From the NCBI RefSeq assembly GCF_036365525.1, contig NC_090387.1:76197300-76261299 (forward strand): 64,000 nt of DNA, in the 5' to 3' direction. Shown here one piece after another: positions 2,209 through 60,693 of the stretch (the first letter of the stretch is position 1; each line of letters starts with the position of its first letter). A program made the position numbers and the translations under genes. Source of the stretch: Heterodontus francisci. Its lineage: Eukaryota. A model generated the notes under the pieces. It worked only from the letters and a program-made list of their open reading frames with translations. It was not told the origin of the DNA and did not search any database.

Positions 2209-2323
2209 CTTTGACAGTACCTCCGCTTAAAATAATTTCCAACGATAACTATCAGCACCATTATGATCAATATGCCCACTAACTGCCGAGACACCAAAAA
2301 GGGAGTAGCGACGATAGCAGCAC
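2209..2323 (-). pseudogene. Gene B transmembrane exon with Arg at the TM start
   Basis: Acceptor CTCTGTTTGTAG, donor GTAAGA, 115 nt; AAIVATPFLVSRQLVGILIIMVLIVIVGNYFKRRYCQ. Confidence 0.8.
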
Positions 2324-2634
2324 CTACAAACAGAGAATAACGGAGATTTAAGAGCGACGGGCGTTGATGTCAATTAACTAGTAAGAAAACCTAGGGATAC
2401 ACGGGATCAATACTAATCGTGTAAAGGCCATTTAATATAGATACAGATTATGTTTTAAAAAATATATTCAAATAAAATGTCAACAAATGAAACAATTCAC
2501 AATCTGACCAATAAATCCTCTATGCAATAAACGAATGCATTAACATCAAATGCTAACCCGTGTTCACAAACGTGTGCTTGTATTAAGAAAAACGATAAAC
2601 GAGCGAACGTTTCTGAAAAATGAATTGACCATAC

Positions 2635-2934
2635 CTTCAAAGTTGTAATTGACATTGTTTGGAGTCTGAAGAGAGACATGAGACACTTGGCAGCTGTCAG
2701 TAGCTCCACTGTGGGATGGCGCCGTATCATTTAAAGTGCTGGATATCTCATACAGTCCCACTTTGGTTTGCTGTTTAGTAGTATTGATCCCGGTTCCAAT
2801 TTTTGTGTTATTCTTATACCAAGTCACATTGAGATCTTTCGGGTAAAATTTAGCTGTTTTACACAGGAGAATCGGAGAAGAGGATGGACGGAATTCAGAC
2901 TCAACTAAGTCGATCCTCAGAGGAGTGGGCGGAA
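2635..2934 (-). pseudogene. Gene B C1-set exon (frame open)
   Basis: 300 nt, phase 1-1; PPTPLRI...LLCKTAKFYPKDLNVTWYK...GLYEISS...DSCQVSHVSL, clearly paralogous to gene A exon 3; the conserved Tyr of YxC is replaced by Asp. Confidence 0.9.
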
Positions 2935-3109
2935 CTTGGGAGGAAAAGAAAATTACTTTATGTTTGAAATATTAATTAATATTTTATTTCTGTAGTCTAT
3001 AATTTAGAACACGAGTTAGGGACGGGTCCCTTTAACATTGTGTTCCGTTGGAACATTTCTAATTTCTTCCTTTGTAAATATTATTAAACATGAAGCTGGA
3101 AATTACATG

Positions 3110-3992
3110 TGTTATGATCCTGTAGTTTTTTCTTTTTCGGAAAGTATGAGATGTGCCTTTAAGGCTGTAACAGAATCAGTACTGCTTTAAGGCAGCGAGC
3201 CCCAGATACCTAGTCAAAGGATGCATTTTCTTTGCCATTGGATAAAACCAGCTTCAAATATGGATTCTCATTGCAGCCACTCAGGACCATTGTTGCTGAT
3301 TGACATTTGAAACTAGCTGAAAAACTGGTTTTTGATACACACACAGACAGCTGGGCCAACACATACTGAAGCAAATAGAGCTCTCTCTCAGTTTATTTAA
3401 ACCCTATTTATTATAGTCTCAGAATTCTGATGTCAAGCCAGAATAATTTCTTAAAAGAAAGTAACCAAATTTCTTTAACTACTGACTGTCATTGCTGAAA
3501 TTCATCGCTGGATAAGAAGCACATCAACTGAACTGCTGAATTAGATTACGGACTGTTCTACTGTTGAAGAACCTTTCCACCCACCGCCACCCTCCCCCCC
3601 CCCACCCCCCATCGGATGGTTGTGAGGACTTCAAGCAACCTTGGACTCTTCCACATTGGAAGATTTCACCAGCAGGAGCGTAAATATGCAAGGACACTAA
3701 TCCTTTTTTTTCTGTTTTAAATGTTATTTATATCTTAGTAGTGTTTAAGGATTTAGCTTTTCTAATTAAACAGTTAATTTGTTGATCTAAAGACACCTGG
3801 TTTGGTTAGCCTCAGTCGGGGGTTAATAGATGGCACAATTTGGCTTGGTCTTTCTTTAATTTAGAAATGTTAAATATGATATGTTAGGCGATCTGTGGAG
3901 GGACGGGACTGAATCAACAGTGCATTTCTCCAACCACAATCAGAATAGTATATTTTGATAGGGGACTTTAACTTGAGTGGTCGGTCGTAACG
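3110..3992 (+). mobile_element. Solo LTR of the Gmr1-like Gypsy family in gene B intron
   Basis: Starts TGTTATGATCCTGTAG, ends GTCGTAACG; homologous to the LTRs at 10048-12046, 15774-16740, 50968 and 55103; flanks CATG/CACA fit a CpG-decayed CACG TSD. Confidence 0.85.
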
Positions 3993-4203
3993 CACAGAAT
4001 CCGTAATGAAGAAAGGATAGTGTAGTGTTTGGTAGAATCATAGAGCCATCGAGCGTAGAAGGAGGCCATTGGTCCATCATGCCTTTTTTTTGGCTCTTTG
4101 AAAGAGCTATGCAGTTAGTCCCACTCCCCTACTCTTTCACCTTAGCCCTGTAAAATTTCCTTTCCAAGTACATATCCAGATTCTGGCAAGATTCTATGAG
4201 ATT

Positions 4204-4676
4204 GGACTCCTGGGTAGGTATTTTCCTTAAAGGTGCGGAGCTCCGTGGACTCGGCCTCATTTCCCGGCGGAGCAGCAGGAGAAGGTAGCGACTCTTCGTT
4301 GGGTGAGTGAAGGCATCAGGAGCTGTGTTTTCAAAGTAAGTACTTACTGTTTTACTTACTGTTTTCCTTGTCTTTGAGTTTCTTTTGGCGCCGGAGGAAC
4401 CGGAAGCTGGTCGGCAGCGAGGACTCCTGGGTAGGTATTTTCCTTAAAGGTGCGGAGCTCCGTGGACTCGGCCTCATTTCCCGGCGGAGCAGCAGGAGAA
4501 GGTAGCGACTCTTCGTTGGGTGAGTGAAGGCATCAGGAGCTGTGTTTTCAAAGTAAGTACTTACTGTTTTACTTACTGTTTTCCTTGTCTTTGAGTTTCT
4601 TTTGGCGCCGGAGGAACCGGAAGCTGGTCGGCAGCGAGGACTCCTGGGTAGGTATTTTCCTTAAAGGTGCGGAGCT
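4204..4676 (+). repeat. 217-bp tandem repeat, 2 full copies plus a 39-bp partial
   Basis: GGACTCCTGGGTAGG recurs at 4204, 4421 and 4638; the units appear identical. Confidence 0.95.
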
Positions 4677-6929
4677 GAGTGATCACAATTCTGTAGCATT
4701 CACTGTGGTAATGGAGAGGGATAGGTATGTGCAACAGGGCAAGGTTTACAATTGGGGGAAGGGTAGATATGATGCTGTCAGGCAGGAACTGAGGAGCATA
4801 AGTTGGGAGCATATGCTGGCAGGGAAGGGCACGGTCGAAATGTGGAACTTTTTCAAGGAGCAGATAGTAGGGGCCATTGATAAGCATGTCCCTGTCAGAC
4901 AGGGAAGGGATGGTCATGTGAGGGAACCGTGGTTGACAAGAGAGGTTGAGAGTCTTGTTAGGAAGAAGAAGGATGCGTATATAAAGTTGAGGAAAAAGGG
5001 CACAGGCATAGCTCTGGAGGGATACAAGATGGCCAGGAAGGATCTGAAGAAAGGGATTAGGAGAGCTAAGAGAGGGCATGAAAAATGCTTGGCGGGTAGG
5101 CTAAAAGAAAACCCCAAGGCCTTTTACGCGTATGTCAGAAATATGAGGATGACTAGGGGGACCATAGGTCCGGTCAAGGACAATAGCGGGAGACTGTGTG
5201 TTGAGCCGGAAGAGATAAGTGAGGTTTTGAATGAGTACTTCTCTTCGGTATTTACGAATGAGAAGGGGTGTATTACTGAAGAGGACGGTGGGAAGCAGAC
5301 TGGTAAGCTCGAGGAAGTGCTCGTTAGGAGGGAAGATGTGTTGGGGTTTTTGAATAACTTGAAGATAGACAAGTCTCCCGGGCCTGACGGGGTATATCCA
5401 AGGATGTTATGGGAAGCAAGGGATGAAATTGCAGAGCCGCTGGCAATGATCTTTTCATCTTCTCTGCTGACGGGGGTGGTACCAGGTGATTGGAGGGTGG
5501 CAAATGTTGTGCCCCTGTTCAAGAAAGGGAATAGGAACAACCCTGGGAATTACAGGCCAGTTAGTCTTACTTCGGTGGTAGGCAAGTTGATGGAAAAGGT
5601 GCTGAGGGATAGGATTTCTGAGCATCTGGAAAGACACTGCTTGATTCGGGACAGTCAGCACGGTTTTGTGAGGGGTAGGTCTTGCCTCACAAGCCTGATT
5701 GAATTCTTTGAGCAGGTGACCAAGCAAGTGGATGAGGGTAAACCAGTGGATGTGGTGTACATGGATTTTAGTAAGGCATTTGATAAGGTCCCCCATGGTA
5801 GACTTATGGAGAAAGTCAGGAGGCATGGGATAGTGGGGAATGTGGCCAGTTGGATTAAGAATTGGCTAACTGATAGAAGGCAGAGAGTGGTCTTAGATGG
5901 TAAATACTCAGCCTGGAGCCCAGTTACCAGTGGCGTGCCGCAGGGATCAGTTCTGGGTCCTCTCCTGTTTGTGATTTTTATTAACGACTTGGATGAGGAA
6001 GTCGAAGGGTGGGTCAGTAAATTTGCAGATGATACAAAGGTTGGTGGAGTTGTGGATACCGAGGAGGGCTATTGTCGTCTGCAAAGGGACTTGGATAGGT
6101 TGCAGTGCTGGGCTGAAAAGTGGCAGATGGAGTTTAACCCTGAAAAGTGTGAGGTCGTCCATTTTGGAAGGACAAACATGAATGCAAAATACTGGGTTAA
6201 CGGTAGGGTTCTTGGGCATGTGGAGGAGCAGAGAGACCTTGGGGTCTATGTGCATAGATCATTGAAAGTTGCAACTCAAGTGGATAGGGCTGTGAAGAAG
6301 GCATATGGGGTGTTAGCGTTCATTAGCAGAGGGATTGAATTTAAGAGCCGTGAGGTGATGATGCAGCTGTACAGGACCTTGGTAAGGCCTCATTTGGAGT
6401 ACTGTGTGCAGTTCTGGTCGCCTCATTTTAGGAAGGATGTGGAAGCCTTGGAGAGGGTGCAGAGGAGATTTACCAGGATGTTGCCTGGAATGGAGAATAA
6501 GTCTTACGAGGAAAGGCTGAACATTCTAGGCCTCTTCTCATTAGAAAGGAGAAGGATGAGGGGTGACATGATAGAGGTTTATAAGATGATCAGGGGAATA
6601 GATAGGGTAGACAGTCAGAAACTTTTTCCCCGGGTGGAGCAAAGCGTTACAAGGGGTCATAAATTTAAGGTGAAGGGTGGGAGATATAAGGGGGATGTCA
6701 GGGGAAGGTTCTTTACCCAGAGAGTGGTCGAGGCATGGAATGCCTTGCCCGGGGAAGTTGTTGAGTCAGAAACTTTAGGGACTTTCAAAAGGCTTTTGGA
6801 TAGGTATATGGATAAAGGAGAATGATGGGGTATAGATTAAATTGTCCTTGACAGAGGACAAAGGATCGGCACAACATCGTGGGCCGAAGGGCCTGTTCTG
6901 TGCTGTATGTTCTATATGTTCTATGTTCT
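4207..6929 (+). mobile_element. Young CR1 (HER1-like) LINE: tandem 5' monomers plus intact RT part of ORF2, endonuclease absent
   Basis: Open frame 4585-6825 with KSPGPDG, NYRPVSL, DFSKAFD, GVPQGSVLGP and KFADD motifs; 3' tail GGGCCGAAGGGCCTGT...(TATGTTC)n; ATTGGA on both sides (4201-4206, 6930-6935). Confidence 0.95.
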
Positions 6930-6935
6930 ATTGGA

Positions 6936-8362
6936 AAATAGCATATGTAACTCCTTTATTCAATAAGGGAGGGAGACAGAAAGCAGAACACTACAGGCCA
7001 GTTATCTTAACGTCTGTCTTAGGGAAAATGTTAGAAGCTGTTATTAAAGACGTTATAGCAGGGCACTTCGAAAAATTCAAAGTAATAAGGCAGAGTCAAC
7101 ATGGTTTTGTGAATGGGAAATCATGTTTACCCAATTCATTGGAGCTCTTTGAAGAAGTAACATGTGCTGCGGATAAAGGGGAACCGATGGATGCACTCTG
7201 CTTGGATTTCCAGAAGGCATTTGATAAGGTGCCACATCAAAGGTTATTGCGGAAAATGAAAGCTGATGGTCTAGGGGGTAACATATTGGCATGGATAGAA
7301 GATTGGCTAGCTAACAGGAAACAGAGAGTAAGCATAAATGGGGCATTTTCTGGTTGGCAAGATGTAATGAGTGGTCTGCCACAGAGACCAATGCTGGGGC
7401 CTCAAATTTTGCAAGTTATATAAATGACTTGGATGAAGGGACTAAAGGTATGGTTGCTATATTTACTGATGTCACAAAGATAGGTAAGAAAGTAAAAAGT
7501 GAAGAGGACATAAGGTGGCTACAAACGGACATAGATAGGTTAAATGAGTGGACAAAGATCTGGCAAATATCGTATAATGTAGGAAAATGTGAAATTGCCC
7601 ATTTTGGCAGGAAGAATAGAAGAGAATCATATCATCTAAATTGCCGAGCTCTGAGATGCCGAAGGATCTGGATGTGCTAGTGCATGAATTTTCAAAAGGT
7701 TAGTATGCAAGTTCAGCAAGTAATTAGGAGAGCTAATAGAATGTTATTGATAATTGTGAAAGAATTGAATACAAATGTAAGGTGGTTATGCTTCGGTTAT
7801 ACAGGGCATTGGTGAGACCACATCTGGAGTACTGTGTACAGTATTGGCCTCCTTATTTAAGAAAGGATTTAAATATGTTGGAAGCAGTTCAGAGAAGGTT
7901 TAATTAGATGAATACCTGGAATGGGCGGGTTGTCTTATGAGGAAAGGTTGGACAGGCTAGGCTTGTATCCGCTGGAGTTTAGAAGAGTAAGAGGTGACTT
8001 GATTGAAACTCAGAATAAGATGCTGAGGGGTCTTGACAGGGTCCATGTGGAAAGGATGTTTCCCCTTGTGGGAGAATATAGAAAATAAATTAGGGCTCAC
8101 CCATTTAAGACAGAGATGAGGAGTTTTTTTTCTCTGAGGGTCAGGAACTCTCTTCCTCAAAAGGCAGTGGAAGCAGAGTCTTTAAATATTTTTTATCGTA
8201 GAGGTACATGGATTCTTGATAAGCAAGGGGGTGAAAGGTTATCGGGGGTGTGGAGTCGAGGTTACAATAGGATCAGCCATTATCTTTTTGAAAAGCGGAG
8301 CAGGCTCGAGGGGCCTAGTGGCCTACACCTGCTCCTAATTTGTATGTTCGCATGTATGTTCG
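6936..8362 (+). mobile_element. Older degenerate CR1 3' portion, interrupted by the young CR1
   Basis: RT remnants (DFQKAFDKVPH) with frameshifts; continues from 4175-4206 (DSGKIL*DWKIA) across the insertion; TATGTTCG tail. Confidence 0.88.
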
Positions 8363-9530
8363 TCGATCCAATTTCCCCTTGAAAATTACTATTGAATCTG
8401 CTTATTTCCAGTTAGTAGGTTCCAGATCACAGCAGCCTGCCGTGCAAAATAATTTCTCCTCCCCTCCCCTCTTGTTCTTTTGCCAATTATCTTAAATCTG
8501 GTGCCTCTGGTTACCAAATCATAGCTATCTGGTTATGTGACTTCACAGAACAGGAATCCAGTTGGCTCAGTGTGTGATGAAAGAGCAATCCAATTAGTCT
8601 CATTCACATATTTGTGCTCCCTTCAGCCCTTTAGGTATTCCTGTCAGAAGTTAAGCTTCTTATTTCTGTTCTAATATATTCCATTCGTTTCCAAACATCA
8701 TCTCCCGATGGTTCGCTGTAACCTCGAAGAAAAACGAAATTCCTGAGGGTTTTCAGAGAATCCCCCATGTAAGTTGTGAGGAACATGTGGCTGTTTTGCG
8801 CAGGGTCATGGTAAATATATTCACAAATGTTTCTTGTAGTTTTGTTTCTAGTGAAATCACAAAGTTGTTTCAAAACACTTACCATCTCGAGAATAAAATT
8901 TCATGCTTATTTTAGCAAAGTTGTAGTGACCAGTCCAACGTTCTTCCATAGTCGGAATTCCCCATTTTCTATTTCCGGTAAAATTGTAGGAGTTTTCTAA
9001 AGAGTTTTCGGCACAGACTCGGTGGGCCGAAGGGCCTGTTTCAGTGCTGTATCTCTAAACTAAACAAAAGTAAATATTTGGCCAGCGATAAGAGAAAATA
9101 TTCCATCGAGAAACCAGCCCATAATTAGCAAATATTGGGCCAGGTTTTGACTTTGTGCGACAATGGAAACCGAGCTAGAGTCAGTCGGCAGTCCCTCTTA
9201 CATATCCTTTATTTTTATTCCCATTGAAGTTGGAACCACCAACTTGCTATCAATTGTCCTACATTATCTACACATCGCCACTGAAGGGGGAAGGTTTCCT
9301 CCCTTGCACTATGCAAGGGAATTGTAATTAAAAAAAAACTGATTACATTGCACAAAACATACGCAGAAAAGCTTCCCCTTAAACTGACAATCTTAGCTCT
9401 CGAGTGGCTTGATTCTGACACTGGATACAAAAACCTGGGCCGGTGTCTCACTCCCGCACGTTTCTTTTCGGTATTTTGCGAAATATCTATTGCACAACTG
9501 ACACTTGTAACATCAGCACCGGCAATTTAC

Positions 9531-9850
9531 CAGCCACAAAGAGCTCTGAGCCGGTTCCATTCCCAAACATTACTCCCCGACAGTACACGGAGCAGTAATA
9601 GCGGCCAGAATCTTTGAAGCTGACATTCCAGAGATGGATGGCGGCTCCTCCTTTTTTTTAACAGAAGTTTATACTGTCCCTTGCTCGCTTTTCCGTCGTC
9701 CAAGAATTCGGCTTCACCATGTCGCCACCGCTGAACCTTTACATCTGATTCCTCTTGAAAGATGGGGAATGTGCAGTAGAAGGTGATGTTTTGCTCCTCT
9801 GAGCGCAACTTTGAGTGGAGGGATGTGGCCGACTGTGGATTCCCCAACAA
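9531..9850 (-). pseudogene. Gene B V-set exon (VJ-like), doubly frameshifted
   Basis: AG/GT-bounded 320 nt (318+2); VGESTVGHIPPLKVAL / QNITFYCTFPIFQEESDVKVQRWR.../ GGAAIHLWNVSFKDSGRYYCSVYCRGVMFGNGTGSELFVA lie in three different frames; the spliced frame reaches TGA early. Confidence 0.88.
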
Positions 9851-9986
9851 CTATCAGAAAGCCAATGGAAACATAGCAATAAACATCTCATTGTACTTAT
9901 AAATAAAGATAGAAACAAGATTAAAAAGAATAATGAAATATAACAACGATAAACCGCGAATGGCGATAATTTCACAAATCACTCAC

Positions 9987-10043
9987 CACACATAGTTCTT
10001 ATCTCTATCTTGTAAATACCGATGTGTGTAATCCCCACCATCA
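9987..10043 (-). pseudogene. Gene B leader exon, 3' half
   Basis: TG ATG GTG GGG ATT ACA CAC ATC G...TGT G then GTGAGT phase-1 donor, 136 bp before the V acceptor; an alternative phase-1 donor GTATTT follows THI. Confidence 0.55.
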
Positions 10044-10570
10044 GTATTGTTACGACCGATCGCTCCAGTCAAAGCCCCCAATCAAAATATACGATACTGA
10101 TAGTGGTGGGAGAAATGCACTGTTAATTCAATCCCATCCCTCCACAGATCGCCTACCATATCATTTGAAGCTTTCCAAATTAAAGAAAGACCCAAATTGT
10201 CCCTTATATTAACCCCCAAATGCGGCTAACCAAACCAGCTATCTTTAAATCAACAAATTAATTGTTTAATTCGAGAAACGGAATTCCAAAACGCTACAAA
10301 GATATAAATAACATTTAAAACATATAAAAAAAGAGTCCTTGCAGATTTACGTTCCTGCCGGATGTGGAACAGAGCAAGGTTGTTGAAGTCCTCACAGCCG
10401 TCCGATGGGGAAATAAAGGTTCTTCAACAGTAGAACAGTCTGTAGTCTAATTCAGAAGTCGAAATAGTTGTTCCTTCGCCAGCGATGAATTTCAACAAGT
10501 AACAATTTGCAAACACCATTTTAATGAATCAATTTGGCTTTAGAATTTTTTTAATGGATAAAAGATTATC

Positions 10571-11592
10571 CAGTGGTGTTCCACAGGGATCCGTGCTGGG
10601 ACCACTGTTGTTTGTGATATACATTAATGATTTGGAGGAAAGTATAGGTGGACTGATTAGCAAGTTTGCAGACGACACTAAGATTGGTGGAGTAGCAGAT
10701 AGTGAAGGGGACTGTCAGAGAATACAGCAGAATATAGATAGATTGGAGAGTTGGGCAGAGAAATGGCAGATGGAGTTCAATCAGGGCAAATGCGAGGTGA
10801 TGCATTTTGGAAGATCCAATTCAAGAGTGAACTATACAGTAAATGGAAAAGTCCTGGGGAAAATTGATGTCCAGAGAGATTTGGGTGTTCAGGTCCACTG
10901 TTCCCTGAAGGTGGCAACGCAGGTAAATAGAGAGGTCAAGAAGGCATACGGCATGCTTTCCTTCATCGGACGGGGTATTGAGTACAAGAGTTGGCAGGTC
11001 ATGTTACAGTTGTATAGGACTTTGGTTCGGCCACATTTGGAATACTGCGTGCAGTTCTGGTCGCCACATTACCAAAAGGATGTGGATGCTTTGGAGAGGG
11101 TGCAGAGGAGGTTCACCAGGATGTTGCCTGGTATGGAGGGCGCTAGCTTTGAAGAGAGGTTGAGTATATTAGGATTATTTTCGTTAGAAAGACGGAGGTT
11201 GAGGGGGGACCTGATTGAGGTGTACAAAATCATGAGAGGTATAGACAGGGTGGATAGCAAGAGGCTTTTTCTCCAGAGTGGGGGATTCAATTACTAGAGG
11301 ACACGAGTTCAAAGTGAAAGGGGAAAAGTTTAGGGGGGATATGCATGGAAAGTTCTTTACGCAGAGGGTGTTGGGTGCCTGGAACGCGTTGCCAGCGGAG
11401 GTGGTAGATGCGGGCACGATGGCGTCTTTTAAGATGTATCTAGACAGATACATGAATGGGCAGGAAGAAAAGAGATACAGACCCTTAGAAAATAGGCGAC
11501 ATGTTTAGATAGAGGATTTGGATCGGCGCAGGCTTGGAGGGCCGAAGGGCCTGTTCCTGTGCTGTAATTTTCTTTGTTCTTTGTTCTTGTTC
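10571..11592 (+). mobile_element. 5'-truncated CR1 nested in the Gypsy LTR
   Basis: SGVPQGSVLGP...KFADD ORF; (TTGTTC)n tail; TATC duplicated at 10567-10570 and 11593-11596; absent from the other LTR. Confidence 0.92.
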
Positions 11593-14500
11593 TATCACAG
11601 TTTAAGTGCTCTTCCTTCAGTTTATATTATCAGAGATCTCTGTTTTGGCTTGACCTTTTAGAATTTTGAGAGAGAATAATAATTAAACAGACTCAAAGAC
11701 TCTTCCTTCAGTTTAAATGGTTTGAGAGCTATCATTTCAGGTGCTAACACACAGATGTCTGTCTGTTGCCCTGTTAGAAAAGACTGTTTAAACTAAAAAG
11801 CCAATTCAAAAGATAATTGCAATATTCTATATCTGGTCCTTGGTTTCTGAATGGCTGTTGCCAGGTAACCAGGACGCATTCTTTGAAGCTGGTTGGTTCC
11901 CTCTTCATATGGATGTATCCAACGGCAACCAAAATGTACTTTCTCCAACACCCGAGGCTTGCTGGTTCTTAAATCAGTATGGCTCCTTTTCCAACCTTAA
12001 AGGCACACCCCATTCTTCCCTCCCAAGAAACTACAGGATCATAAAACCTCTGCTGCTGCCGGAATGAAGTGCCATTCCTGGAATGCGTTTCATTACATTG
12101 GGTAAAAAAATACAATTTGAAAAAATAACCGTACACTTTTTTTTAAAATTAAAGGGCATACACTTTTCTAAAATGTTAAGACTACAGCAACAATTCCACC
12201 AGAACGTTTCGGCTTTAAATTTTCAAAAGGTTGTCCCAATTAACCCATGTCAAATTTAAAAACACAGTCTTCCAATTGATTTTTGTTTCCCTCCCAAGTG
12301 TCTCGTTTATTCATCACCTCAGCCAGGTGAACTGCACAGCTCGGAGCACTGACCATGACTGGGTTCATTACTCTCTGAGAAGTTTCTCGAGTACCCCTTA
12401 ACCTATGTGGCTTCACTTCACACTGGAAAACCCTGTCTCATGTAACAGTAGCTAATTTATTCTTACTCTGGGGTGTCAAATGAATTTGACAGTATCCCCC
12501 CAACACATATGTCTTTTAAGACACATTGTGTTGCCCACTCTGTCCACACAGTCCTTTAAATCAGAATTTGGGTAGGAATTTGCCTTCTTTACTGCAGTGA
12601 CTTTTCTAGAGTTTATGCAAGTTTGAGCCATCCCACCAGGTTTAGACATCAAGACCATCTGCGAATTCCAGCTGTCCTGACTAGGTTCAACTAAGCTGCA
12701 CTTCAGCATGCATTGTACCTTTGCTTCCACTTGGGCCTGTCTGTCTGGACCTAAGTGATAAGGACGTTGTTTTAAAGAAATGGTTCCCCCTATATCCACA
12801 TCATGTGTGGTTAAGGTTGTCCATCCTGGCTTATCCCTACAAACGTTTTGAAACATTGTGAAAACCCTGGTTAGGACTTCTCGCTGTTTTGCCTGTAAGT
12901 GTCAAATCCGATTGTTTAATATTCCTGTGTTTGCTAATTGGATAGTTTGACGTTCAATCCGAGAATTTCCTAGGCCTACCTCTGCCTCATCCTCTTCCTT
13001 CTCAACAGTCCCGATTACCTGACATACCTGTACTGGCTTATCCTCCTCCCTGCAGTAATATTGTTTGAGCATTTTAATGTGACACAACCGGTTCTTCATC
13101 TGGCGATCAGGGGTGTCAGTCAAGTAATCTACTTTACCCACTCTTTTGACCACTCTATATGGGCTACTGAACCGTGCTTTTAAAGGTTCTCCCTGTAATG
13201 GTAACAACGCTAATACTTCATCCCCTGGTTTAATAGTAGGTTGTAAGACGTGGCCAGTAACAATGTTGGCTTATGTGCAATTTGGTCTTCCGAATTCCCC
13301 TATGTCCTGCAAAAGTAATGTCAATGTAATGTGCTAACTCTAATAATCCTTTTCGATATTTAGGTGGTATCACTACCTTTTCAACAACTGTCCAGTCTTC
13401 ATCTGCAGGCCTTTGAGGCGGTCTCCATTCCCTCCTCAAAACCCCGTTTGCCATAAAATAGCCTTCTGTAACTCCTCTCACCTCAGCTTCTGAAAGAGCC
13501 GCCTGTGCTATTCGGTATATCTCTGGATCAGTTTGCTGTGCTGCAATGATAGATGATCTGTTAAACATCTCATTTGAATTATCTAAATCTTCAAATAAGG
13601 TTTCAGATGCTTGGCTATCTATTTGTGATGCTCCTTTTACCTACAGCAATGGATCCTGTTTAGCCATTGCTCAGGTAACTACACACACAGCAAATATTCC
13701 TGGAATTGTTTCTGAAATTGCTCCATTTCCTTAATTTCGCTGGGTTCCTCTGTAACTGTAGGAGAAACTGATATTTTTGATCCTGCCAAATAATTTCCTA
13801 GGAGTAGATCAATACCCTTCACTGGTAAACTGTGGATAACACCTATGGTAACTACCCAGATATCAAGTTACCCTCTCGGCGTACTTTATGCAAAGGTACG
13901 GGTATACACACTCCGCCAATTCCAGGAACTAAAACTTTAACATTCAAGGCGCTCTCTGGTGGAAACCTCATATCTTTTCCCAGCAAGTGTGTTTGGGTTG
14001 CTCTTGAGTCCCGAAGTATAATGATAGGTTTTTCTGCCTCACTTACAGGATACGGAGTTACTGTTCCCTTTGACAAAAATTCATCATAATGCTGGTATTT
14101 TATTCTTAACATCTACACTTCTTCCAGTTTTAGTATCTGGTTTCACATTCACAGCTGTTGTTAAAGCTAAAGCCTGGTCTGCTATACTGTCACTCAGAGT
14201 GTTTTCCTCTGCACTAACTTTACATACTTGAACAAGTCCTATGGGTTTACCTCGCAATTTCCAGCACTCTGAACGATGATGACCCATTTTGTTGAATGAT
14301 AACACTTTGGCTTGTGAACCTCACTTCTACCCTCAGCACCTTCTTTTCTGACCTGATGAGGTGATCCTGGACCATTCCCATATGTTCCTTCTTGTGCCCG
14401 GCTACTTGCCTTCCTTTTACTCTCCCACTTTCTATCCTTCTCGGGTTTATGGGGGTGACGGACAAAATAAATTGGCTTATTCACAAGCTCAAAATTCAGC

Positions 14501-15524
14501 AACCTCTGCTGCCTGCCTAGCTTTTAAAACTTTCAGGTTATCTATATTAGTTCTCACTACTGAAGGAATGGAGTTTTTAAACTCTTCTAAGAGAATCAAT
14601 TCTCAAAGTTCTCATATGTGGTTTCTATCTTTGATGCCTGTATCCAATGGTCAAAATTAATTGACTTCACCCTGTCAAATTCAATATATGTCTGCCCAGC
14701 CAATCTCTGTAAGTTCCTAAACTTCTGACGGTAAGCTTCAGGGACTAATTCATGCTGTGAGAATAGCATTTTTTGTCATCTCATAATCTGCAGAGGCCTC
14801 TTCAGGAAGCATGGCATAAGCTTCATGAGATCTGCCTACTAGCCTGCCCTGAATAAGCAATGCCCAGCTTTCTTTCAGCCATTTCATCTGTTTGGCTTTT
14901 TTCAAAAGGTATGAAAAATGGCTCTACGTCCCTTTCCTCGAACGTAGGAAGAGCCTGTTTAAATTTAAAGAACTTTTCGCTGGGTCCTGATCTAAATTCA
15001 TATTCTTCCTGCCCCGGATTTTCCCTGGATTCAAGACTAGCCCTTTGTCTTTGTTCCATCTCTTTTAATTTAAATTCCCTCTCTTCTCTTTCACTTTCTC
15101 TCCGAAATGCTCTATCTTTCCCCCAATTCAATTTATTTCCTTTCTATCTGAGCCCTAGCCAATACCACTGCATCACTCTCGGACCTACTACCTTCTTGTC
15201 TCTTGTATTCCCTTTCTTGTTCCTCGTATTCCTCTTCAGCTTCTTCATCATCATCATCATCTTCATCGCCTACTAATTCCAGATGTTCGGCTATTATGTC
15301 AATTATCCCTGCTCTTTTGTCACCTGATTTTAATTCCAACCACAATTTCGCTGGCAATTCTTTTAATTTGTTCTTGGTTAAAATTACCAAGTCACTCAGG
15401 GAAACATTTTGATTTTCCAAAAACTCTGCTACAACGACTAATGCCATTACAATGTTATAGATTGTACCTTATCATGCAAGACTCCTGGTTCTTTTAATTT
15501 CTTTGTAATTGGCATTAGATTTAG

Positions 15525-15766
15525 ATCCCCAAAATCGAGTTTCCAATTGATTTATTCCCAGATTCGGGAGATGTTAAACATGATGCCAAACGCAAGACCC
15601 CAATTTAAATATGTCATCTCAGAAATGAGTGATTAATATCATTCCAAATGTGAGCCATCCAGATTAGTTTGATCCTGATCCCAGATGCGAGCCACAGAAT
15701 GAAATATGATTCAACTGCAAGTGAGCCCCCAGTTAAGATATGATTCAAATCCTGGACAAACTGCCA
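15525..15766 (-). repeat. Array of degenerate tRNA-Pro PBS-like units in the Gypsy 5' leader
   Basis: About 6-8 units resembling ATCCCGGACGAGCCCCCA (plus strand) at ~30-36-bp spacing between the LTR and gag. Confidence 0.55.
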
Positions 15767-16740
15767 ATTAATATGTTATGACAGACCGTTCCAGTCAAAG
15801 TCTCTAATCGAAATATACGATTCTGATTGTGGTGGGAGAAACACACTGTTAATTCAATCCTGCCCCTCCACAGATCGCCTAACATATCATTTGAAATTTT
15901 CCAAATTAAAGGAAGACCCAGCCAAATTGTACCATCTATTCACCCCCGAATGAGGCTAACCAAACCAGGTGTCTTTAAATCAACAAATTAACTGTTTAAT
16001 TAGAAACACGAAATTCCAAAATGCGACAAAGAAATAAGCAATATTTAAAATAGAGAAAATTAAAGTCCTTGCAGACTTATGCTCCTGCCGGATATGGAAC
16101 TGTCCAAGGTTGCTTGAAATCCTCACAGCCATCCGATAGGGGAAAAAAGGTTCTTCAACAGTAGAACTGTCCGTAGTCTAATTCAGAAGTCGAAACAGTT
16201 GCTCCTTCTCTAGTGATGAATTTCAACAAGTAACAAGTTGCAAACTCTTTTTTAATGAATCCATTTGGCTTTAGAATTTTTAAGGGATAAAAGATTGTCA
16301 CCGTCGAACTTCCCTTCCTTCAGTTTAAATTATCAGCAATCTCTGTTTTGGCTTGAATTTTTAGAATTTTGAGAGAGAATAATAATTAAATAGACTAAAT
16401 TCTCTTCCTTCAGTTTAAATGGCCCGAGAGCTATCATTTCAGGTGCTAACACAAAGTCTGTGTCCCCGTTAGAACAGACTGTTTCAACTAAACAGCCAGT
16501 TCAAAAGATAATTGGAATATTGTACATCCAGTCCATGGTCTCTGAAAGGCTGTTGCCGGGTAACCAGGATGCATTCTTTGATGCTGGTTTGTTCCCTCTC
16601 AGTATGGTTGCATTCAACGGCAACCAAAATGCACTTTATCTAACTCCTGAGTCTTGCCAATTCTTAAAGCAGTACTGCTCCTTTTCCAGCCTTAAAGGCA
16701 CACCGCATTCTTCCCAAAAATAAATTACAGGATCATAACA

Positions 16741-16756
16741 GTACACATGGAAGCAT
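16741..16756 (-). pseudogene. Gene B leader exon, 5' half (MLPCV), separated from its 3' half by a Gypsy insertion
   Basis: ATG CTT CCA TGT GTA C abuts the LTR end; removing the element and one TSD copy restores MLPCVLMVGITHIG in frame; ETS motif CGGAAGT at 16766-16772 lies just upstream. Confidence 0.6.
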
Positions 16757-21085: not shown

Positions 21086-21214
<129 letters not shown>

Positions 21215-29335: not shown

Positions 29336-29470
29336 TCAGCTTCTCTCTTTCTTTATCACGGTTACTTCAGCATAGACTGCGCTCTTGTCTTTAGATTTTG
29401 ATCTTTTCTTGGAACCAGCAAGCTGCAGAGCTGCGTAAGTCAACTTGTTATCACCGCCTCTTTGTTTAGT
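29336..29470 (-). CDS. Gene A exon 7: terminal coding exon with ITIM (LTYAAL) and ITIM/ITSM-like (AVYAEV) motifs
   Basis: Acceptor TTACTTTTGCAG, phase 0; TKQRGGDNKLTYAALQLAGSKKRSKSKDKSAVYAEVTVIKKERS then TGA; the seven exons sum to 1056 nt (351 aa plus stop) with no internal stop. Confidence 0.88.
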   Translation of the reverse strand, partial: TKQRGGDNKLTYAALQLAGSKKRSKSKDKSAVYAEVTVIKKERS

Positions 29471-29723: not shown

Positions 29724-29852
29724 TGATGAAAGGTCACAGACCTGAACGTTAACTCTGTTTCTCTCTCCATAGATGCTGGCAGACCTGCTGAGTATTTCCA
29801 GCACTTTCTGTTTTTGTTTTCCAGATTTCCAGCATCCGCAGTATTATGCTTT
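29724..29852 (+). repeat. Short interspersed shark repeat (Penelope-like terminus)
   Basis: TGATGAAAGGTCACAGACCTGAACGTTAACTCTGTTTCTCTCTCC...TTTCCAGCATCCGCAGT; other copies at ~18515, 31245 (-), 41085 and 49370. Confidence 0.65.
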
Positions 29853-30683
29853 TATAAAATTAGTTCTCCTGCTGATGTAGCCCATTTAAAGGAGCAGATT
29901 GATACTTCAATTAAAATAGACAAATGAATTTCATACAGCCTGTTAAGGGTATTTGGAATGCTGATACTGTAAAGCACCGTTTTTAAGGCTCTGTTGCTTG
30001 AGCCTCGACAGCCAATGTGACCCTTACCCCAAGAATGAGGTTTCAAGAACACATTTTCAGCCGCCTTTCCCCTAGCCCCCGCCGATCTCTGAGACACGAA
30101 GGTCAAATATGATGAACCTTGGCTGAGATCAGCTGACATAGCACAGTGGTAGATGCAACCTGGGATCTTTGCATTTCCTGCGGTCCAGTGTCGCACCAAT
30201 TAACATTGCTTATGTATCAATGAATGATTTGAGCTGTACCTGGGCATACACCGTACTCTGCTCCTTCTGTTGGTGTTTCGGATTGCTCTTGGTCCTGGCT
30301 TCGACAGTGGCGTCAGGCAATTCTTGCTTCGTCTGTAAAATAGATATTTACCAGTCTTATCAGGTGAGTTTGTTATTTTTTAATTTGTAATCGTTGTTAC
30401 AGCCAGATCCGAAAATGAAAGGGGCTAATTTTGATTGACTGCTGCCGTGTAAAACGGATGGATAGACTCCGCAACCCGTTTTACATCTCTCATGATTTCT
30501 ATTTCCAACCAAGTCAGCGGGAGAGATGCGGAATCGCCTGCACTCGTTTTATACTGTCCCATAAAGTCAACACTACCTCGGTAAAATCTGTATAACTTGT
30601 TAGAGTTGACTCTGTTATCACAGAGTGTTGATTTTGTGTAGAAATGGTTTGGATATCATTCGCGCACCAATCGCTCGCCCTAC

Positions 30684-30794
30684 CTGGGAGTAGACGGTGT
30701 GCTCTATCTCTTGTCCAGTTTTGGGGGGTCCTTTGCCGTCTCTCAAGTTTCGGGTAGCGTCGGCGGCAAGTTGTTCACTTGGTCCTTGTGTAAC
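30684..30794 (-). CDS. Gene A exon 6: cytoplasmic exon ending in HTVYSQ
   Basis: Acceptor TCTTATTTTTACAG, donor GTAGGG, 111 nt, phase 0-0; VTQGPSEQLAADATRNLRDGKGPPKTGQEIEHTVYSQ. Confidence 0.8.
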
Positions 30795-34392: not shown

Positions 34393-34497
34393 CATTTGAT
34401 ACCTTTAATTTGAGTCTGGTCAAAATTATTATTAATAGTAAAATTGCCAGTATGCCTCCGGCACATCCAAAACTCAGCTGAAATTTATTATCAGTAC
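34393..34497 (-). CDS. Gene A exon 4: transmembrane exon (uncharged)
   Basis: Acceptor GATCCTGCAG, donor GTAAGA, 105 nt, phase 1-1; TDNKFQLSFGCAGGILAILLLIIILTRLKLKVSN, a hydrophobic stretch followed by basic stop-transfer residues. Confidence 0.88.
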
Positions 34498-47519: not shown

Positions 47520-47845
47520 ATACATACACACATACATACAAATACACGTAATCACACGGAGACACACATATATACATGCACACACATTCACATATACACA
47601 CAGACGCACACATACACGTACAAACTCATACATGCACCTATTAAAAAAGACTTGTAGTTATATAGCACCTTTAATGATCCAGGAATCCCAAAGCACTTAA
47701 CAGCCAATGAAGTGTAGTCACTGTTGTAATGCAAGAATACACACACACACTCGCACACACACCCATATACACCCACAAACACCAAAACACATGCACACAC
47801 ATGCATACACATGCACGTATATGCACACATACACATACACACACA
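47520..47845. repeat. Degenerate (CA/TA)n microsatellite region
   Basis: CACACA/CATACA-rich tracts flanking a SINE tail; a perfect (CA)n also occurs at 29166-29189 in the gene A 3' UTR. Confidence 0.85.
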
Positions 47846-48519
47846 GATGGGAGAATGGTGAAGTCTTGAAATGGAAATGGGATCATTTTCCTTCCTCGCT
47901 CATGCAATATATTTATTTTCCCTTCACTCTTCCCTTCGTTCCATTCCCATTTTATCTGCAACATCCTGTTTGAATATGTCCAATCAGATTCCCACCCTAC
48001 CACAGCTCCGAAACAGCCCTAATCAAGTTCGCAAATGACATTTTGTGATGGCAACCTCATTACAAATAACACTTCATTACAAATACTGTCTACTTCTACC
48101 TCTGTAACATTACCTGACTTCACCCTACTTCAACCCTCTGCAGCAGAATCAGTTATCGATGCCTTGCTGACCTATATTGTTGATCAATGGAAGCTAATGG
48201 GAATAAAAATCCGAAGAAACGTAAAACAGGCTGCTGATCCACTTACACCATTGCATATAGTCCTGATCTACCTAATTACACAAATGAACACCAACATCCA
48301 ATTTGCATAAACTTTAGCTCATCCAAAACACTGCTGACCATATCCTATCCCATACCAAGTTGTGCTCACCCATCATGCCTATCCTGGCTGACCGACATTG
48401 GTTTCTCACTGCCCCCCATCTGCCCGCATCCTCTCCACATCCCTCAGTGTCTCAAATTTAAGATTCCCATCCTCATTTACATTCTTTCATGGCTCTGTTC
48501 TTCTCTATCTAGAACCAAC

Positions 48520-49070
48520 GAACCATAAATAAATTACGGCATAGAAAGAGGCCATTCAGCCCATCGAGTCTGCTCCCGCTGAAAAAACTAGCCACACAAT
48601 CTAATCCCCCCTTCCAGCACCTGGCCCGTAGCCTTGCAGGTTACAGCACTTCAGGTGCATGTCCAGGTATGTTTTAAAAGAATTGAGGGTTTCTGCCTCC
48701 GCTACCATTCCTGGCAGTGAATTCCAGACACCCACCACCCTCTGGGTGAAAAAGCTTTTCCTCATGTCCCCTCTAATCCTTCTGCCAGTCAGCTTAAATC
48801 TGTGCCCCCTGGTAATTGACTTCTCCTCATAATCTTGGACACCTCCATTAATTCATCCCCTCAGCCTCCTCGGTTCTAAGAAAAACAACTCTCGCCCATC
48901 CAATCTTTCCTCATAGCTGCAACTTTCAAGCCCTGGCAACATTCTTGTAAATCTCCTCTGTACTCTCTCCAGAGCAACAATGTCCTTCATGTAATGTGGT
49001 GACCAGAACTGTACGCAATACTCCAACTGTGACCTAACCAGCATTTTATACAGTTCCAGTATTACATCTC
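48520..49070 (-). mobile_element. CR1 3' fragment
   Basis: LVRSQLEYCVQFWSPHY ORF at 48853-49044 and reverse CR1 tail; embedded in L2-like remnants (~47990-49330); another old CR1 lies at ~49460-50350. Confidence 0.8.
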
Positions 49071-55360: not shown

Positions 55361-55363
55361 GTG

Positions 55364-56236
55364 AGCCGTAGTGCAAAACTGGCGACAGCGAAATATTTTT
55401 GAATTCTGCCTAATTCGCTTTCCCACAATGAAAATAACAAATCGGACAGAGCGTAAAACGCGCTGCAGATTCGCGATGGCCCGAATCATGCTGCTGTCCT
55501 TATGTTAGGAGGCTTTTGGACTCAAGGGAGGGGGACATCACAGCCAAACACTATCCTAAACTCCACACATGAAATCTTTCTGAAGGAATCACTGATAGTG
55601 ATCGGGAGATTGGCCTGGTTGATTCCACCCTTCCGAGGAAATAATTACGTAACACGAATCTACTGCCCCACCTGCAAAATCAGCTCATTCAGCAAGTCGT
55701 AGGATGGAATCTGAGATCTTCCTACACTGTGCATACATAACAACAAGACCATTGGTTATTGGCTATGTTAAACCAGAAACAGATTGGGAAGTGCACTTGT
55801 TTCAACCTTTATCGAGTTTATCGGGTTATCCCCAGTCTAATAATAGCAGGATCATCAGCAATTCATTTTGTTGGTAAGCATGGTTAAATCAGACTCCAAT
55901 CTAACTTACAGGTTATCAATAAACAAACATCTGGTAGATTGATTCTATTGATCTTTGCGGACACGTTTTCTGGTCACCCTGGCCTAAACATAAAATATGG
56001 TTCTGAATATTTTACTGAATTGCTCAATATGTATTGACCAAGCTGAACAGTCCGGAAAACAAAGTGCGGAGGGAGGTATCTGCTCTCGCTTGGTGTAGCC
56101 AAATCACTATATAACAACAATGCATTTACAATATCCCCAAACATACATCAGAACAATTCTTCCTCATTTGAAGCAACCTGAGTGCCAGTCGTTGCTCAGT
56201 TGGTAGGACTCTGCTTCTGTGATGCAAGGCTGTGGG
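55364..56236 (+). repeat. Local segmental duplicate of ~444-1328
   Basis: Colinear, diverged copy over ~0.85 kb; ORFs 580-780 and 55502-55702 are near-identical translations of the non-coding copies. Confidence 0.9.
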
Positions 56237-59200: not shown

Positions 59201-59997
59201 TCAAGGAATGGGGAGTGTGTGGGAAGGGGTGGAAGAATCCGTTCATGCTCGGATACAAATAATTACAAACTGACTGGCAATATTTGAAAAGAGATGAATT
59301 TATTAGCGAAAGCAGGTAAGAATTGAGGGGAAATAATGCAGACATTCCATGGGATAGTTCAGCCGGGACAGCTTTCACCCTGAAGAGAAAGTGCCCTCTC
59401 CGCTGTGGGGAAAACGTTCAGTGGGAGCTGCAGTTACTGGTCTGGGAATTGAATACACACTGACTCGTCATCAGGTGGCAGCTCCCAGAGGTGGCAACCG
59501 GAGCTCGGACCTTATACAAACATTTCATAAAATCCTGGGTTTCTTTTACTGTAGACAGACACCGGCCTTTCTCCAACGGGTAATCGATTTTTGTGGAGTT
59601 TTCTAGCCCAGGAGATGTCTGTAACAACTCAGTAACATAGTTTCTAACTCCCTCCCCTCTTTCTCCTCACAGCTATACTCCGTGAGTGAAATGATCCTGG
59701 TCTCAATAACAGAAACCAATGGATCTTAGCTCTGGATCCCGGCTCTATCGGTCTGAATTCACTCCTGTGAGAGCCACTATGCCTGGTGCCAGCACTGGCT
59801 TAGTGATTTCAGCGTAAATCTTTAGATCATTGCGAAGGCTCCAATCTATCACCCTCTCACTAACTTGCAACATGGCTAAGAATTGAAAAGCATAACAAGC
59901 ATCCAATGGCGGGAAGAGCTGCGGCTACATTTCCGGATCTCTCCCACTGCGCGAGATCTTTCCAGCAGGGGGTTTTAAATTCAATGTGATTTCTTAC

Positions 59998-60315
59998 CGG
60001 TTACCTGGAGCCTTGTGCCGGTGCCATTCCCCACTTTGTCCGCTATCTTCACTTTGCAGTAATACGTGCCGGAGTCCGAGACATCCACATTGAAAAGGCG
60101 AAAGACGGCGCTAGCTCGATTTCGAATTTCAAACTGATACCTGCTGTCCTTTTTCGACTTGAGGAAGCTTTTCTCACCGTCCTTCCACCAGTGCACTCGG
60201 ACACTGAATATATCTTTAGCAAACGGGAAGCTGCAGTAGAAGGTCACATTGGCACCTATGCTATCGTTCAGATAAGGGGGGTACTGTTGCACATTGAGCC
60301 TGGGAGCACCGGTAA
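59998..60315 (-). CDS. Gene A exon 2: V-set Ig domain with germline-joined J-like segment
   Basis: Acceptor TTTCTTTCTCGACAG, donor GTAAGA, 318 nt, phase 1-1; VTGAPRLNVQQYPPYLNDSIGANVTFYC...VHWWK...DSGTYYCKVKIADKVGNGTGTRLQVT with canonical Cys/Trp/DxGxYxC and GxGT motifs. Confidence 0.93.
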
Positions 60316-60647
60316 CTGTCGAGAAAGAAACAGTTCAATTTATATAGAAAACAACAGAAAGGCTGCAAATACTCAGGCAGAATGAGGGCATTGACATTGA
60401 CAATAGTAACATTTCATGCTATTAATCTTTTATCAGAACTGGCAAAGGTTAAAGATTTACATCGCGCCTTCCGACCATCTAAATGATTGGGGCAGCATTA
60501 AGAGAGAATGGAGAAGGGAAGAAACTTTCAAACAGAGAAGAGGGAATAAACAGAAGTAGAGGCGGAGCAAAACAGGGTAAAATACATTCGTAAAATCTCT
60601 TTATGCAAAGAATAAGGGTTCTATTCTGGTGAAGCAGCTTGACTCAC

Positions 60648-60693
60648 CTGCAGAGACGATTGCTAGGATGAGCAGGAGAATACAGCTGGACAT
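60648..60693 (-). CDS. Gene A exon 1: signal peptide of V-C1-TM-ITIM Ig-superfamily receptor (SIRP/NCR3-like)
   Basis: ATG at 60693, MSSCILLLILAIVSA plus 1 nt, then GTGAGT donor; 46 nt, phase 1; hydrophobic leader 332 bp upstream of the V exon. Confidence 0.88.

Follow-up and report, generated by a model that had tools for sequence, protein, structure and literature searches.

A predicted inhibitory receptor gene of the horn shark Heterodontus francisci, here called gene A, adjoins an old and broken relative, gene B, which has retained an arginine in its membrane segment. On the full account, which we consider probable, gene A is an intact inhibitory member and gene B an old, dead, activating-type relative of a receptor family that does hold inhibitory/activating pairs, although A and B are not matched to one another. 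The window analysed is a stretch of 64,000 nucleotides (contig NC_090387.1, positions 76,197,300 to 76,261,299), and all coordinates below are positions within it. The first-pass annotation had read the two genes as a paired-receptor system in sharks. Given that the C1 domains of A and B are only 44% identical (42/96) and that the intact paralog of B is modelled without a transmembrane (TM) segment, this interpretation is only partly supported.

Two tandem genes with a common exon plan

The window holds two tandem genes, both on the minus strand and both built as leader / VJ-type V / C1 / TM. Across the window, tblastn detects two V exons and two C1 exons and no others. The reported exon sizes are confirmed (V, 318 nt in A vs 320 nt in B; C1, 297 vs 300 nt), and the proposed same-strand paralogy is borne out, both genes belonging to one receptor family with a common exon plan. 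The strong divergence described for the V domains is found as well, the V pieces being 40-44% identical.

Gene A is a predicted inhibitory-type receptor

Gene A is already present in RefSeq (XP_067905821/22) under the automatic label 'NCR3LG1-like', as a protein with a V domain and a single C1 domain. The translations of all eight of its exons are those of RefSeq XP_067905822.1 (P0163):

60648..60693, minus strand: leader exon, coding part (MSSCILLLILAIVSA); phase 1 donor; residues 1-15 of XP_067905822 (P0163)
59998..60315, minus strand: V exon, 318 nt; VJ-type V-set (Pfam V-set 39.7 bits, cut-off 26), J-like end GNGTGTRLQV; 100% match to P0163
41508..41804, minus strand: C1-set exon, 297 nt; Pfam C1-set 34.7 bits (cut-off 21)
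34393..34497, minus strand: stalk and TM exon with uncharged hydrophobic core (FGCAGGILAILLLIIIL); phase 1 end; matches P0163
32256..32299, minus strand: small cytoplasmic exon (SKKNSEEVGHAEKP), overlooked in the first-pass annotation
30684..30794, minus strand: tail exon, ending in TVYSQ
30240..30332, minus strand: tail exon, with STVYAQ at its end
29336..29470, minus strand: last coding exon; canonical ITIM LTYAAL, ITIM-like AVYAEV, then stop

The earlier exon list was thus incomplete: it lacked the exon at 32299-32256, and the donor of the TM exon lies 9 nt beyond the point that an initial reading would give. The last exon, 29336..29470, belongs to RefSeq isoform X2 (P0163), and isoform X1 (P0182) has a different last exon, which lies outside the window. 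In exon 30684..30794 the first tyrosine motif has been lost (LAADATRNL vs LTAYATLNL in paralogs). Gene A had been described as having an uncharged TM and ITIMs; the TM core is indeed uncharged, but only LTYAAL fits the ITIM consensus, while AVYAEV and two TVY[S/A]QT motifs depart from it. Given this uncharged TM and a tyrosine-motif tail with one canonical ITIM, gene A is classed by its predicted protein as an inhibitory-type receptor. Were it to act like SIRP-alpha, its tyrosines, once phosphorylated, would recruit SH2 phosphatases.

Over its full length, the gene A V domain comes closest, among solved chains, to amphioxus VJ-C2, TCR alpha and Ig light chains; the PDB neighbours of its C1 domain are Ig CH, UrIg2 and MHC-I alpha3. 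A derivation of the gene A V exon from the B lineage was considered and rejected, as this V is 41% identical to that of the intact B paralog and 35-49% identical to other V domains of the family, with P0129 nearest (49%). Searching the introns of gene A by tblastn with nine C-termini yielded no convincing alternative Arg-type TM exon or last exon belonging to one.

Gene B is an old pseudogene

The remains of gene B, and the element that interrupts it, are arranged as follows, with B' denoting the intact paralog:

16739..16756, minus strand: leader exon, first part (MLPCVL); compare the B' leader, MLPSILILLITHN
10047..16738, minus strand: LTR retroelement of 6.7 kb within the leader exon, flanked on both sides by the 5-bp repeat TACTG
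10020..10041, minus strand: leader exon, second part (MVGITHI plus one base); donor g/gtattt, phase 1
9531..9850, minus strand: V exon, 320 nt, in three reading frames by tblastn against intact B' (P0151)
2635..2934, minus strand: C1 exon, 300 nt, open; Pfam C1-set 47.2 bits (cut-off 21); 86% identical to B'
2209..2323, minus strand: TM exon; Arg codon at 2288-2286; tail KRRYCQR

Gene B is dead, as had been claimed: the LTR element splits its leader, the V frame is broken twice relative to B', and a core Tyr has been lost. The two leader parts, when joined, are identical to the B' leader at 7/13 residues. One LTR of the intervening element spans about 10048-12044, interrupted by a nested insert at about 10551-11580, and the other spans 15774-16738; Pfam finds integrase domains within the element, Integrase_H2C2 exceeding its cut-off. 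Given that the LTRs are only 85.3% identical over 958 positions (K2P 0.165) and that one carries a nested insertion, the lesion is old. Hence gene B is an old pseudogene, and its proposed death 'in this haplotype' only is unlikely.

In the V exon, the three tblastn segments against B' (P0151) lie at 9887-9792, 9790-9638 and 9657-9478, and the assembly has a +1 change in an A run near 9792 and another in the A8 run at 9659-9652. The '+2' formerly assigned to this exon is therefore correct as a length of 320 nt, but in reality it consists of two separate +1 changes, each within an A run. In the C1 domain, Asp stands in place of the conserved Tyr that precedes the second Cys (ATDSC; ATYSC in B'), and in the tree the branch of B measures 0.13 vs 0.036 for B'. 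In the sequence of events that we envisage, gene B would first have been killed by the LTR retroelement in its signal-peptide exon, and the two frameshifts, the loss of the core Tyr and the long branch would reflect the decay that followed. That B is alive, with frameshifts that are homopolymer assembly errors, is suggested by each frame change being a single extra A in an A run; we find this hardly credible, since the LTR element in the leader exon is independent of homopolymer calls, the change of Tyr to Asp and the long branch also suggest decay, and protein look-ups and searches returned no protein model of B. Nor does any B exon have an exact match among the RNA-type contigs.

The membrane arginine of gene B

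The Arg that the first-pass annotation noticed in the TM exon of gene B lies, by hydropathy alone, within the membrane in the outer part of the TM, where it occupies positions 4-8 in the 19-23-residue segments of highest hydrophobicity. Its alignment column also holds Arg in eight family proteins of class II, all short-tailed and drawn from five species, as well as in three further TMs. The reading frame ends 10 residues beyond the membrane, at a TAA (2207-2205) that overlaps a gtaaga donor. Gene B has, in this respect, an activating-type layout, with a basic residue in the predicted TM helix and a 10-residue tail free of signalling motifs; as its Arg falls within the helix's outer third, its TM exon would represent the build of the family's short-tailed members. 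On the other hand, the alignment scores of this exon overlap between neutral ITIM-type and Arg-type TMs (best 53, P0050, vs 46, P0091), it does not have the D-H of Arg-type TMs, and, given its long drift, the Arg of B could in principle postdate the death of the gene.

Could gene B instead have been inhibitory, with ITIM exons lying just left of the window? The window holds only 2.2 kb past the B TM exon, whereas the tail exons of gene A start 2.1 kb and end 5 kb after theirs. Nevertheless, the two candidate donors of the B TM exon are both phase 2, while the TM donor of gene A is phase 1. As the next exon of gene A needs phase 1, a tail exon of A type could not be read in frame in B; together with the in-frame TAA at the donor, this leaves no phase-compatible route to an A-type tail. 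Furthermore, positions 1-2208 contain no tail-like relic, and the earlier statement that no ITIM exon for B is detectable in the window holds, as the 2.2 kb downstream of the TM exon yield no tail-like exon by tblastn. We therefore regard an inhibitory past for B as very improbable. The same stretch, searched by tblastn with nine C-termini, gave nothing convincing for an Arg-type TM exon or last exon.

Before its death, gene B most likely encoded a receptor of activating type, non-inhibitory and dependent on an adaptor, as far as its exons allow this to be predicted. A 2014 survey (PMC4016189) traces the FcR gamma chain back to an origin in bony fish, so the adaptor of a shark Arg-TM receptor cannot be presumed to be FcR gamma.

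B' and the B lineage

The intact paralog B' is XP_067906047/48 (P0151), labelled 'tapasin-related protein-like'. In the tree, B and B' form a separate lineage (support 100/100), apart from the group of gene A, and B' is the sole intact B-type gene. A word search with B' for orthologs elsewhere returned its own isoform and relatives at most 43% identical; this search needs shared 5-residue words, and distant orthologs may escape it. So far, then, the B lineage is a divergent, horn-shark-only branch of the receptor family.

Both RefSeq models of B' stop seven codons past C1, without a TM. Contigs of a B'-like copy in run X5 (RNA by guess only), which differ from the window by 8-10%, cover C1 and the next 260 nt, passing the C1 donor, and none falls on the TM exon; there are further TM-less models in the family, such as P0164. 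All this would fit a lineage of secreted V-C1 proteins (decoys or soluble binders), in which the TM exon of B survives as a relic out of use, its Arg being without meaning for signalling. We think this unlikely. Despite long neutral drift, the TM exon of B retains a phase 1 AG acceptor, an open frame and a GT donor; part of it is still covered by a paralogous DNA contig; and its Arg falls in the conserved Arg column of the family. Moreover, Logan contigs are informative on presence but not on absence, and TM-less models are common among fragments (32 of the 106 sequences classified below).

The wider VJ-C1 receptor family

At E<=1e-10, a C1 profile built from A and B retrieved 316 proteins. 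Sharks, rays and a chimaera (Callorhinchus) are represented among the named members, and the family's names are automatic only: SIRP-alpha-like, tapasin-related-like, NCR3LG1-like and, for many members, NCBI's 'tyrosine-protein phosphatase non-receptor type substrate 1-like'. Gene A is an intact, annotated member of this large family, whose proteins are membrane receptors of cartilaginous fish with a non-rearranging VJ-C1 build. No literature on the family was found, including in passages of PMC12227049, PMC10751288, PMC8455134 and PMC4016189, although supplementary gene lists (shark MHC, UrIg) might name its genes.

We classified 106 single-C1 sequences, comprising 104 database proteins (all of at most 520 residues) and the C1 exons of A and B from the window. 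A neutral TM with an ITIM tail occurs in 39, gene A among them; 12 show the pattern of R, 15-18 residues, D/E-H and a short tail; 22 have other TMs, the TM-less models number 32, and gene B completes the count. A basic residue, Arg in 13/13, lies in the outer part of 13 of the 62 distinct predicted TM segments, and none of these 13 is followed by more than 56 residues. Of the 49 segments without a basic residue, 30 have ITIM tails of at least 40 residues. Counter to a clean split, an ITIM-regex match in a tail of at least 40 residues is also found in 2 of the 13 basic-TM proteins (P0018, P0050). Intact Arg-TM members include XP_067905015 of the horn shark and XP_038661933 of the catshark. The horn shark also has an A-like, short-tailed relative, XP_067906052, whose ectodomain is 88% identical to that of A' and whose model skips the TM. 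The possibility that the sequence directly following each C1 donor is a relic of an Arg-type TM, a single gene having formerly produced both forms by read-through, was rejected as unsupported: in local alignments, the read-through peptides gave z of -1.2 to 1.7 against eight Arg-type tails.

Within the family, the catshark Arg-TM protein P0166 is 93.1% and 94.4% identical to P0165 and P0185, respectively, over 216 ectodomain residues, and P0185 has an ITIM tail; Heptranchias P0018 and P0024 are 91.8% identical over 98 residues. Judged from these predicted proteins, true inhibitory / Arg-TM pairs occur in the family, with near-identical ectodomains and opposite signalling parts.

The idea of a paired-receptor system in sharks therefore survives at the level of the family, which holds true pairs at 92-94% identity, but not for A and B, whose ectodomains, at ~40-44%, are unmatched. 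To be sure, A and B stand in tandem on the same strand with a like exon plan, A has an ITIM tail, and B has a TM Arg with no tail exons in the window, as would be expected of a matched inhibitory/activating pair for the same ligand in which B is broken only in the sequenced haplotype. We nonetheless deem such a pair quite improbable. Identities of 44% in C1 and ~40-44% in V are far from those of the family's true pairs; B clusters solely with B' (100/100), outside the group of A; the V of A, 41% identical to B-type V, lies no nearer to it than to V domains elsewhere in the family (35-49%); and a loss confined to one haplotype is at odds with disrupting LTRs that are 14.7% diverged and carry a nested insert. 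In terms of their sequences, A and B are thus best described as neighbours from different sub-lineages and not as mutual counterparts.

Comparison with known receptor systems

In the SIRP system of mammals, the ITIM-tailed member binds SHP-1/2, and the activating member pairs a TM Lys with DAP12. Like the SIRPs, members of the shark family start at the N terminus with a V domain of VJ type and continue with a C1-set domain, and the whole-family profile, which counts SIRP-alpha and SIRP-gamma among its best non-antibody PDB matches, runs collinear with SIRP-alpha (2wng, 114 bits) and with SIRP-gamma (102 bits) across V and their first C1. The shark tails repeat tyrosine motifs of the LTYAxL / TEYAxL type, and inhibitory members coexist with short-tailed ones that have a charged TM. 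The two systems differ in that the shark family has a single C1, while the SIRPs have a pair of C1-set domains next to the membrane and so three Ig domains altogether, and in that the charged TM residue is Lys in SIRP-beta but in the shark family an Arg close to the outer edge, mostly accompanied by D/E-H at the inner one.

The classical paired Ig-like receptors include KIR, LILR/PIR, the NITRs of bony fish and the Arg receptors of NKp30/OSCAR type. The shark family resembles them in its multigene clusters, its birth-and-death turnover and its ITIM-tailed inhibitory members, as well as in counterparts with near-identical ectodomains, a basic TM residue and short tails. Unlike these receptors, which are known to use only C2, I or V domains, it has a membrane-proximal C1-set domain.

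UrIg and UrIg2, as described in passages of PMC12227049, are likewise cartilaginous-fish proteins in which a non-rearranging VJ domain is followed by C1-set domains, and UrIg2 is the second-best PDB match of the C1 profile and the whole-family profile alike. UrIg2, however, carries nine C1-type domains besides its VJ one according to the same passages, where the shark receptor family has one C1; the main text of that paper mentions neither ITIM nor SIRP nor arginine. B7-H6 (NCR3LG1) and tapasin-related protein share the V + C1 ectodomain, but in the shark family the V domain bears a GxGTxL motif of J-like kind and the tail resembles that of the SIRPs, and neither protein is among the best 60 PDB matches of the C1 and whole-family profiles. 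The NCR3LG1-like and tapasin-related labels appear to reflect generic V-C1 similarity.

Significance

The locus itself is of modest interest, gene A being already annotated and gene B a relic; the lead lies in the intact Arg-TM members (XP_067905015, XP_038661933). To our knowledge, paired inhibitory/activating receptors have been described mainly in mammals, birds and bony fish, with C2, I or V domains. We tentatively propose, at somewhat less than even confidence, that sharks, rays and chimaeras possess a large, unnamed, SIRP-like family of non-rearranging VJ-C1 receptors with a single C1, which repeatedly spawns activating-type twins by way of a swapped-in TM (outer Arg, inner Asp/Glu-His) and whose V exons are exchanged, or diversify very fast, between near-identical genes. 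If this is true, a C1-bearing paired-receptor system made of the same kind of VJ-C1 chain as the antigen receptors dates to the base of the jawed vertebrates. In cartilaginous fish, the on/off receptor logic appears on a chain whose two domains, VJ and C1, are the pair that T-cell receptors and antibodies also use, and the family bears both on the age of on/off receptor systems and on the role of the non-rearranging relatives of antigen receptors.

Organization of the locus

The locus consists of an annotated inhibitory gene, gene A, and an old pseudogene, gene B, a broken relative.

Exons of genes A and B and the insertion in gene B (gene A exons were read directly in the sequence)
60693-60648, minus strand, gene A leader exon
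60315-59998, minus strand, gene A V exon, 318 nt
41804-41508, minus strand, gene A C1 exon, 297 nt
34497-34393, minus strand, gene A stalk/transmembrane (TM) exon
32299-32256, minus strand, gene A small exon
30794-30684, 30332-30240 and 29470-29336, minus strand, three gene A tail exons
16756-16739 and 10041-10020, minus strand, gene B leader exon in two pieces
10047-16738, minus strand, decayed Ty3/gypsy-type LTR element in the gene B leader exon, with two LTRs and integrase domains
9850-9531, minus strand, gene B V exon, 320 nt
2934-2635, minus strand, gene B C1 exon, open, 300 nt
2323-2209, minus strand, gene B TM exon

Pfam assigns the gene A V exon to the V-set (39.7 bits) and the C1 exons of A and B to the C1-set (34.7 and 47.2 bits), and tblastn matched two V exons and two C1 exons, with no others, within the 64-kb window. 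The exon sizes, common C1 motifs and diverged V domains described in the first-pass annotation are borne out, as are, on reading the sequence, its uncharged TM in gene A and TM Arg in gene B. In the tail exon at 30684-30794, the first tyrosine motif of gene A is gone (LAADATRNL versus LTAYATLNL in paralogs). EERTVYAQTKQ recurs in many family tails and lies outside both the ITIM and the ITSM consensus.

Exon translations were searched singly rather than concatenated. P0163 (XP_067905822.1, Heterodontus francisci), found by a word search with a family protein, matches gene A exon by exon; hence, gene A is already publicly annotated, with 'NCR3LG1-like' as its automatic name. Isoform X1 of gene A (P0182, XP_067905821) has its terminal exon outside the window. 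Given that this exon is also the last exon of XP_067905823 (P0162), the next paralog to the left, the P0182 transcript model spans pseudogene B into that paralog. The isoform numbers X1-X3 at NCBI cover products of two genes.

Elsewhere, LINE-type reverse-transcriptase/endonuclease ORFs occupy introns and intergenic space on both strands (4585-8400, including a 746-aa ORF at 4585-6825; 24145-26900; 35700-38400; 38570-40030). A TG/CA-rich simple repeat at 47588-48003 yields long artificial CVCVC-type ORFs on both strands. A very high-copy short repeat lies at 1350-1770, its core recurring near 29800-29850; its contig depth, when summed, climbs to 1.9 million for the DNA run and to several hundred thousand for those guessed to be RNA, and many contig joints and loose ends begin within it.

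Age and decay of pseudogene B

B has its nearest protein relative in B' (XP_067906047/48; P0151, P0004). This intact paralog lies on the same chromosome, and its accessions come right after those of an A-type gene, XP_067906043-46. Aligning the B V exon with B' requires three reading frames (9887-9792, 9790-9638 and 9657-9478; tblastn), both frame shifts being a single extra A within an A run. The C1 exon of B is 86% identical to B', with the Tyr before the second Cys lost in B. In the B leader, 6.7 kb of foreign DNA separates MLPCVL from MVGITHI; B' has MLPSILILLITHN as its leader. The insert is flanked on either side by the 5 bp TACTG, and a non-LTR reverse-transcriptase fragment is nested within one of its LTRs (~10551-11580). 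Since these LTRs are only 85.3% identical over 958 positions (K2P 0.165), the leader-exon lesion is old. Thus, the claim that B is dead in this haplotype holds as to death, given the insert and the frameshifts relative to B'; judging by the diverged LTRs, however, the lesion is probably not a private defect of a single haplotype.

B and B' group together on the C1 tree (support 100/100), and the longer branch of B (0.13 versus 0.036 for B') is expected of a drifting copy. No protein of gene B appeared among the results of our protein look-ups and searches. Contigs from three runs guessed to be RNA included no exact match on B exons, which is weak evidence.

The transmembrane arginine of gene B

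The first-pass annotation had asked whether the B Arg is intramembrane; by hydropathy only, it falls inside the most hydrophobic windows, at positions 4, 5 and 8 of those of 19, 21 and 23 residues, and Arg-type family members have theirs at similar positions (2-8). When 23 post-C1 segments were aligned with MAFFT, the B Arg fell in line with that of eight Arg-type proteins and of three further TMs with SRC or LRC, in a column mostly occupied by Gly among neutral TMs. B lacks the inner Asp-His, however; its Gly-Asn at that place is closer to the Gly-Lys seen in neutral TMs, and alignment scores did not separate the Arg-type from the neutral class for its TM exon. The donor of this exon is phase 2 and holds an in-frame stop; the TM exon of gene A ends in phase 1, so that an A-type tail would be out of frame. 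The remaining 2.2 kb of window beyond it hold no tail relic, in agreement with the earlier statement that B has no ITIM exon in the window. Most likely, B formerly encoded a V-C1 receptor that had an Arg in the membrane and a tail of 10 residues.

An activating B lineage is counted against by both B' RefSeq models, which end seven codons past C1. Contigs of run X5 (RNA by guess; 8-10% off the window) cover C1 at 2634-2915 and the adjoining 2376-2657, and carry the B'-type Tyr codon over C1; none lies on the B TM exon, although contigs prove presence, not absence. This pattern fits a B' message ending after C1. One paralogous DNA contig covers the 3' end of the B TM exon. A protein word search with B' found no B-type ortholog in other species.

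Inhibitory and arginine-type receptors in the family

A profile of the A and B C1 exons, searched against 1.84 billion representatives, retrieved 316 proteins at E<=1e-10. Family members occur in horn shark, catshark, Heptranchias, Chiloscyllium, Carcharodon, Mustelus, Pristis, Mobula, Hypanus, Narcine and Callorhinchus, and bear automatic names only (SIRP-alpha-like, SIRP-beta-like, tapasin-related-like, NCR3LG1-like, TCR- or Ig-like). For classification, we used 106 single-C1 sequences: 104 database proteins of <=520 residues and the C1 exons of A and B. Gene A is counted among the 39 that combine a neutral GCAGG-type TM with a long, ITIM-matching tail. Twelve have a TM with Arg, 15-18 residues and then Asp/Glu-His, followed by a short tail; other TMs occur in 22, mostly truncated models, 32 lack a TM, and gene B is the one left over.

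A basic residue occupies the outer TM part in 13 of the 62 distinct predicted TM segments, all 13 having <=56 residues beyond the TM, whereas 30 of the 49 without it have ITIM tails of at least 40 residues. Two basic-TM proteins (P0018 and P0050) still contain an ITIM-pattern match. P0016, P0166, P0167, P0175, P0018, P0046, P0050 and P0143 have Arg close to the outer end and, 17 residues on, Asp/Glu-His close to the inner end, a double polar signature kept across five species. With at least six changes of the Arg-type label over eight rows of the C1 tree, the Arg type arose or was exchanged repeatedly.

True inhibitory/Arg-TM pairs occur in the family. Over 216 ectodomain residues, the Arg-TM protein P0166 of catshark matches P0165 at 93.1% identity and P0185, which has an ITIM tail, at 94.4%; for P0018 and P0024 of Heptranchias the figure is 91.8% over 98 residues, and horn shark P0164 (Arg-type last exon) shares 87.9% over 214 residues with A' (P0152), an inhibitory paralog. 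Hence, the proposed paired-receptor system in sharks probably stands for the family, on the catshark and Heptranchias pairs, but not for A and B as a pair. These two are 44% identical in C1 and about 40-44% in V; A groups with horn shark paralogs (24 rows, support 100/97), and B and B' stand apart. Gene A and P0162 are 92% identical in C1 and only 43% in V, and the nearest V to that of A within the compared set is 49% identical, which points to exchange or very fast evolution of the gene A V exon.

Comparison with known receptor systems

A profile built from 50 family proteins was searched against solved structures. Antibody chains matched best, together with UrIg2 at 126 bits, SIRP-alpha at 114 bits, aligned collinearly through V and its first C1, and SIRP-gamma at 102 bits; this is in agreement with a C1-only profile. 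The family would work in the manner of SIRPs and other paired receptors. It departs from SIRPs in two features, having a single C1 domain where they have two, and Arg in place of the TM Lys of SIRP-beta. It also differs from UrIg, which has many C1 domains (PMC12227049).

A literature search covering main-text passages found no description of the family. Taken together, our results confirm what the first-pass annotation observed and partly support its interpretation. The wider family is probably a SIRP-like paired-receptor system of cartilaginous fish, and an apparently undescribed one.
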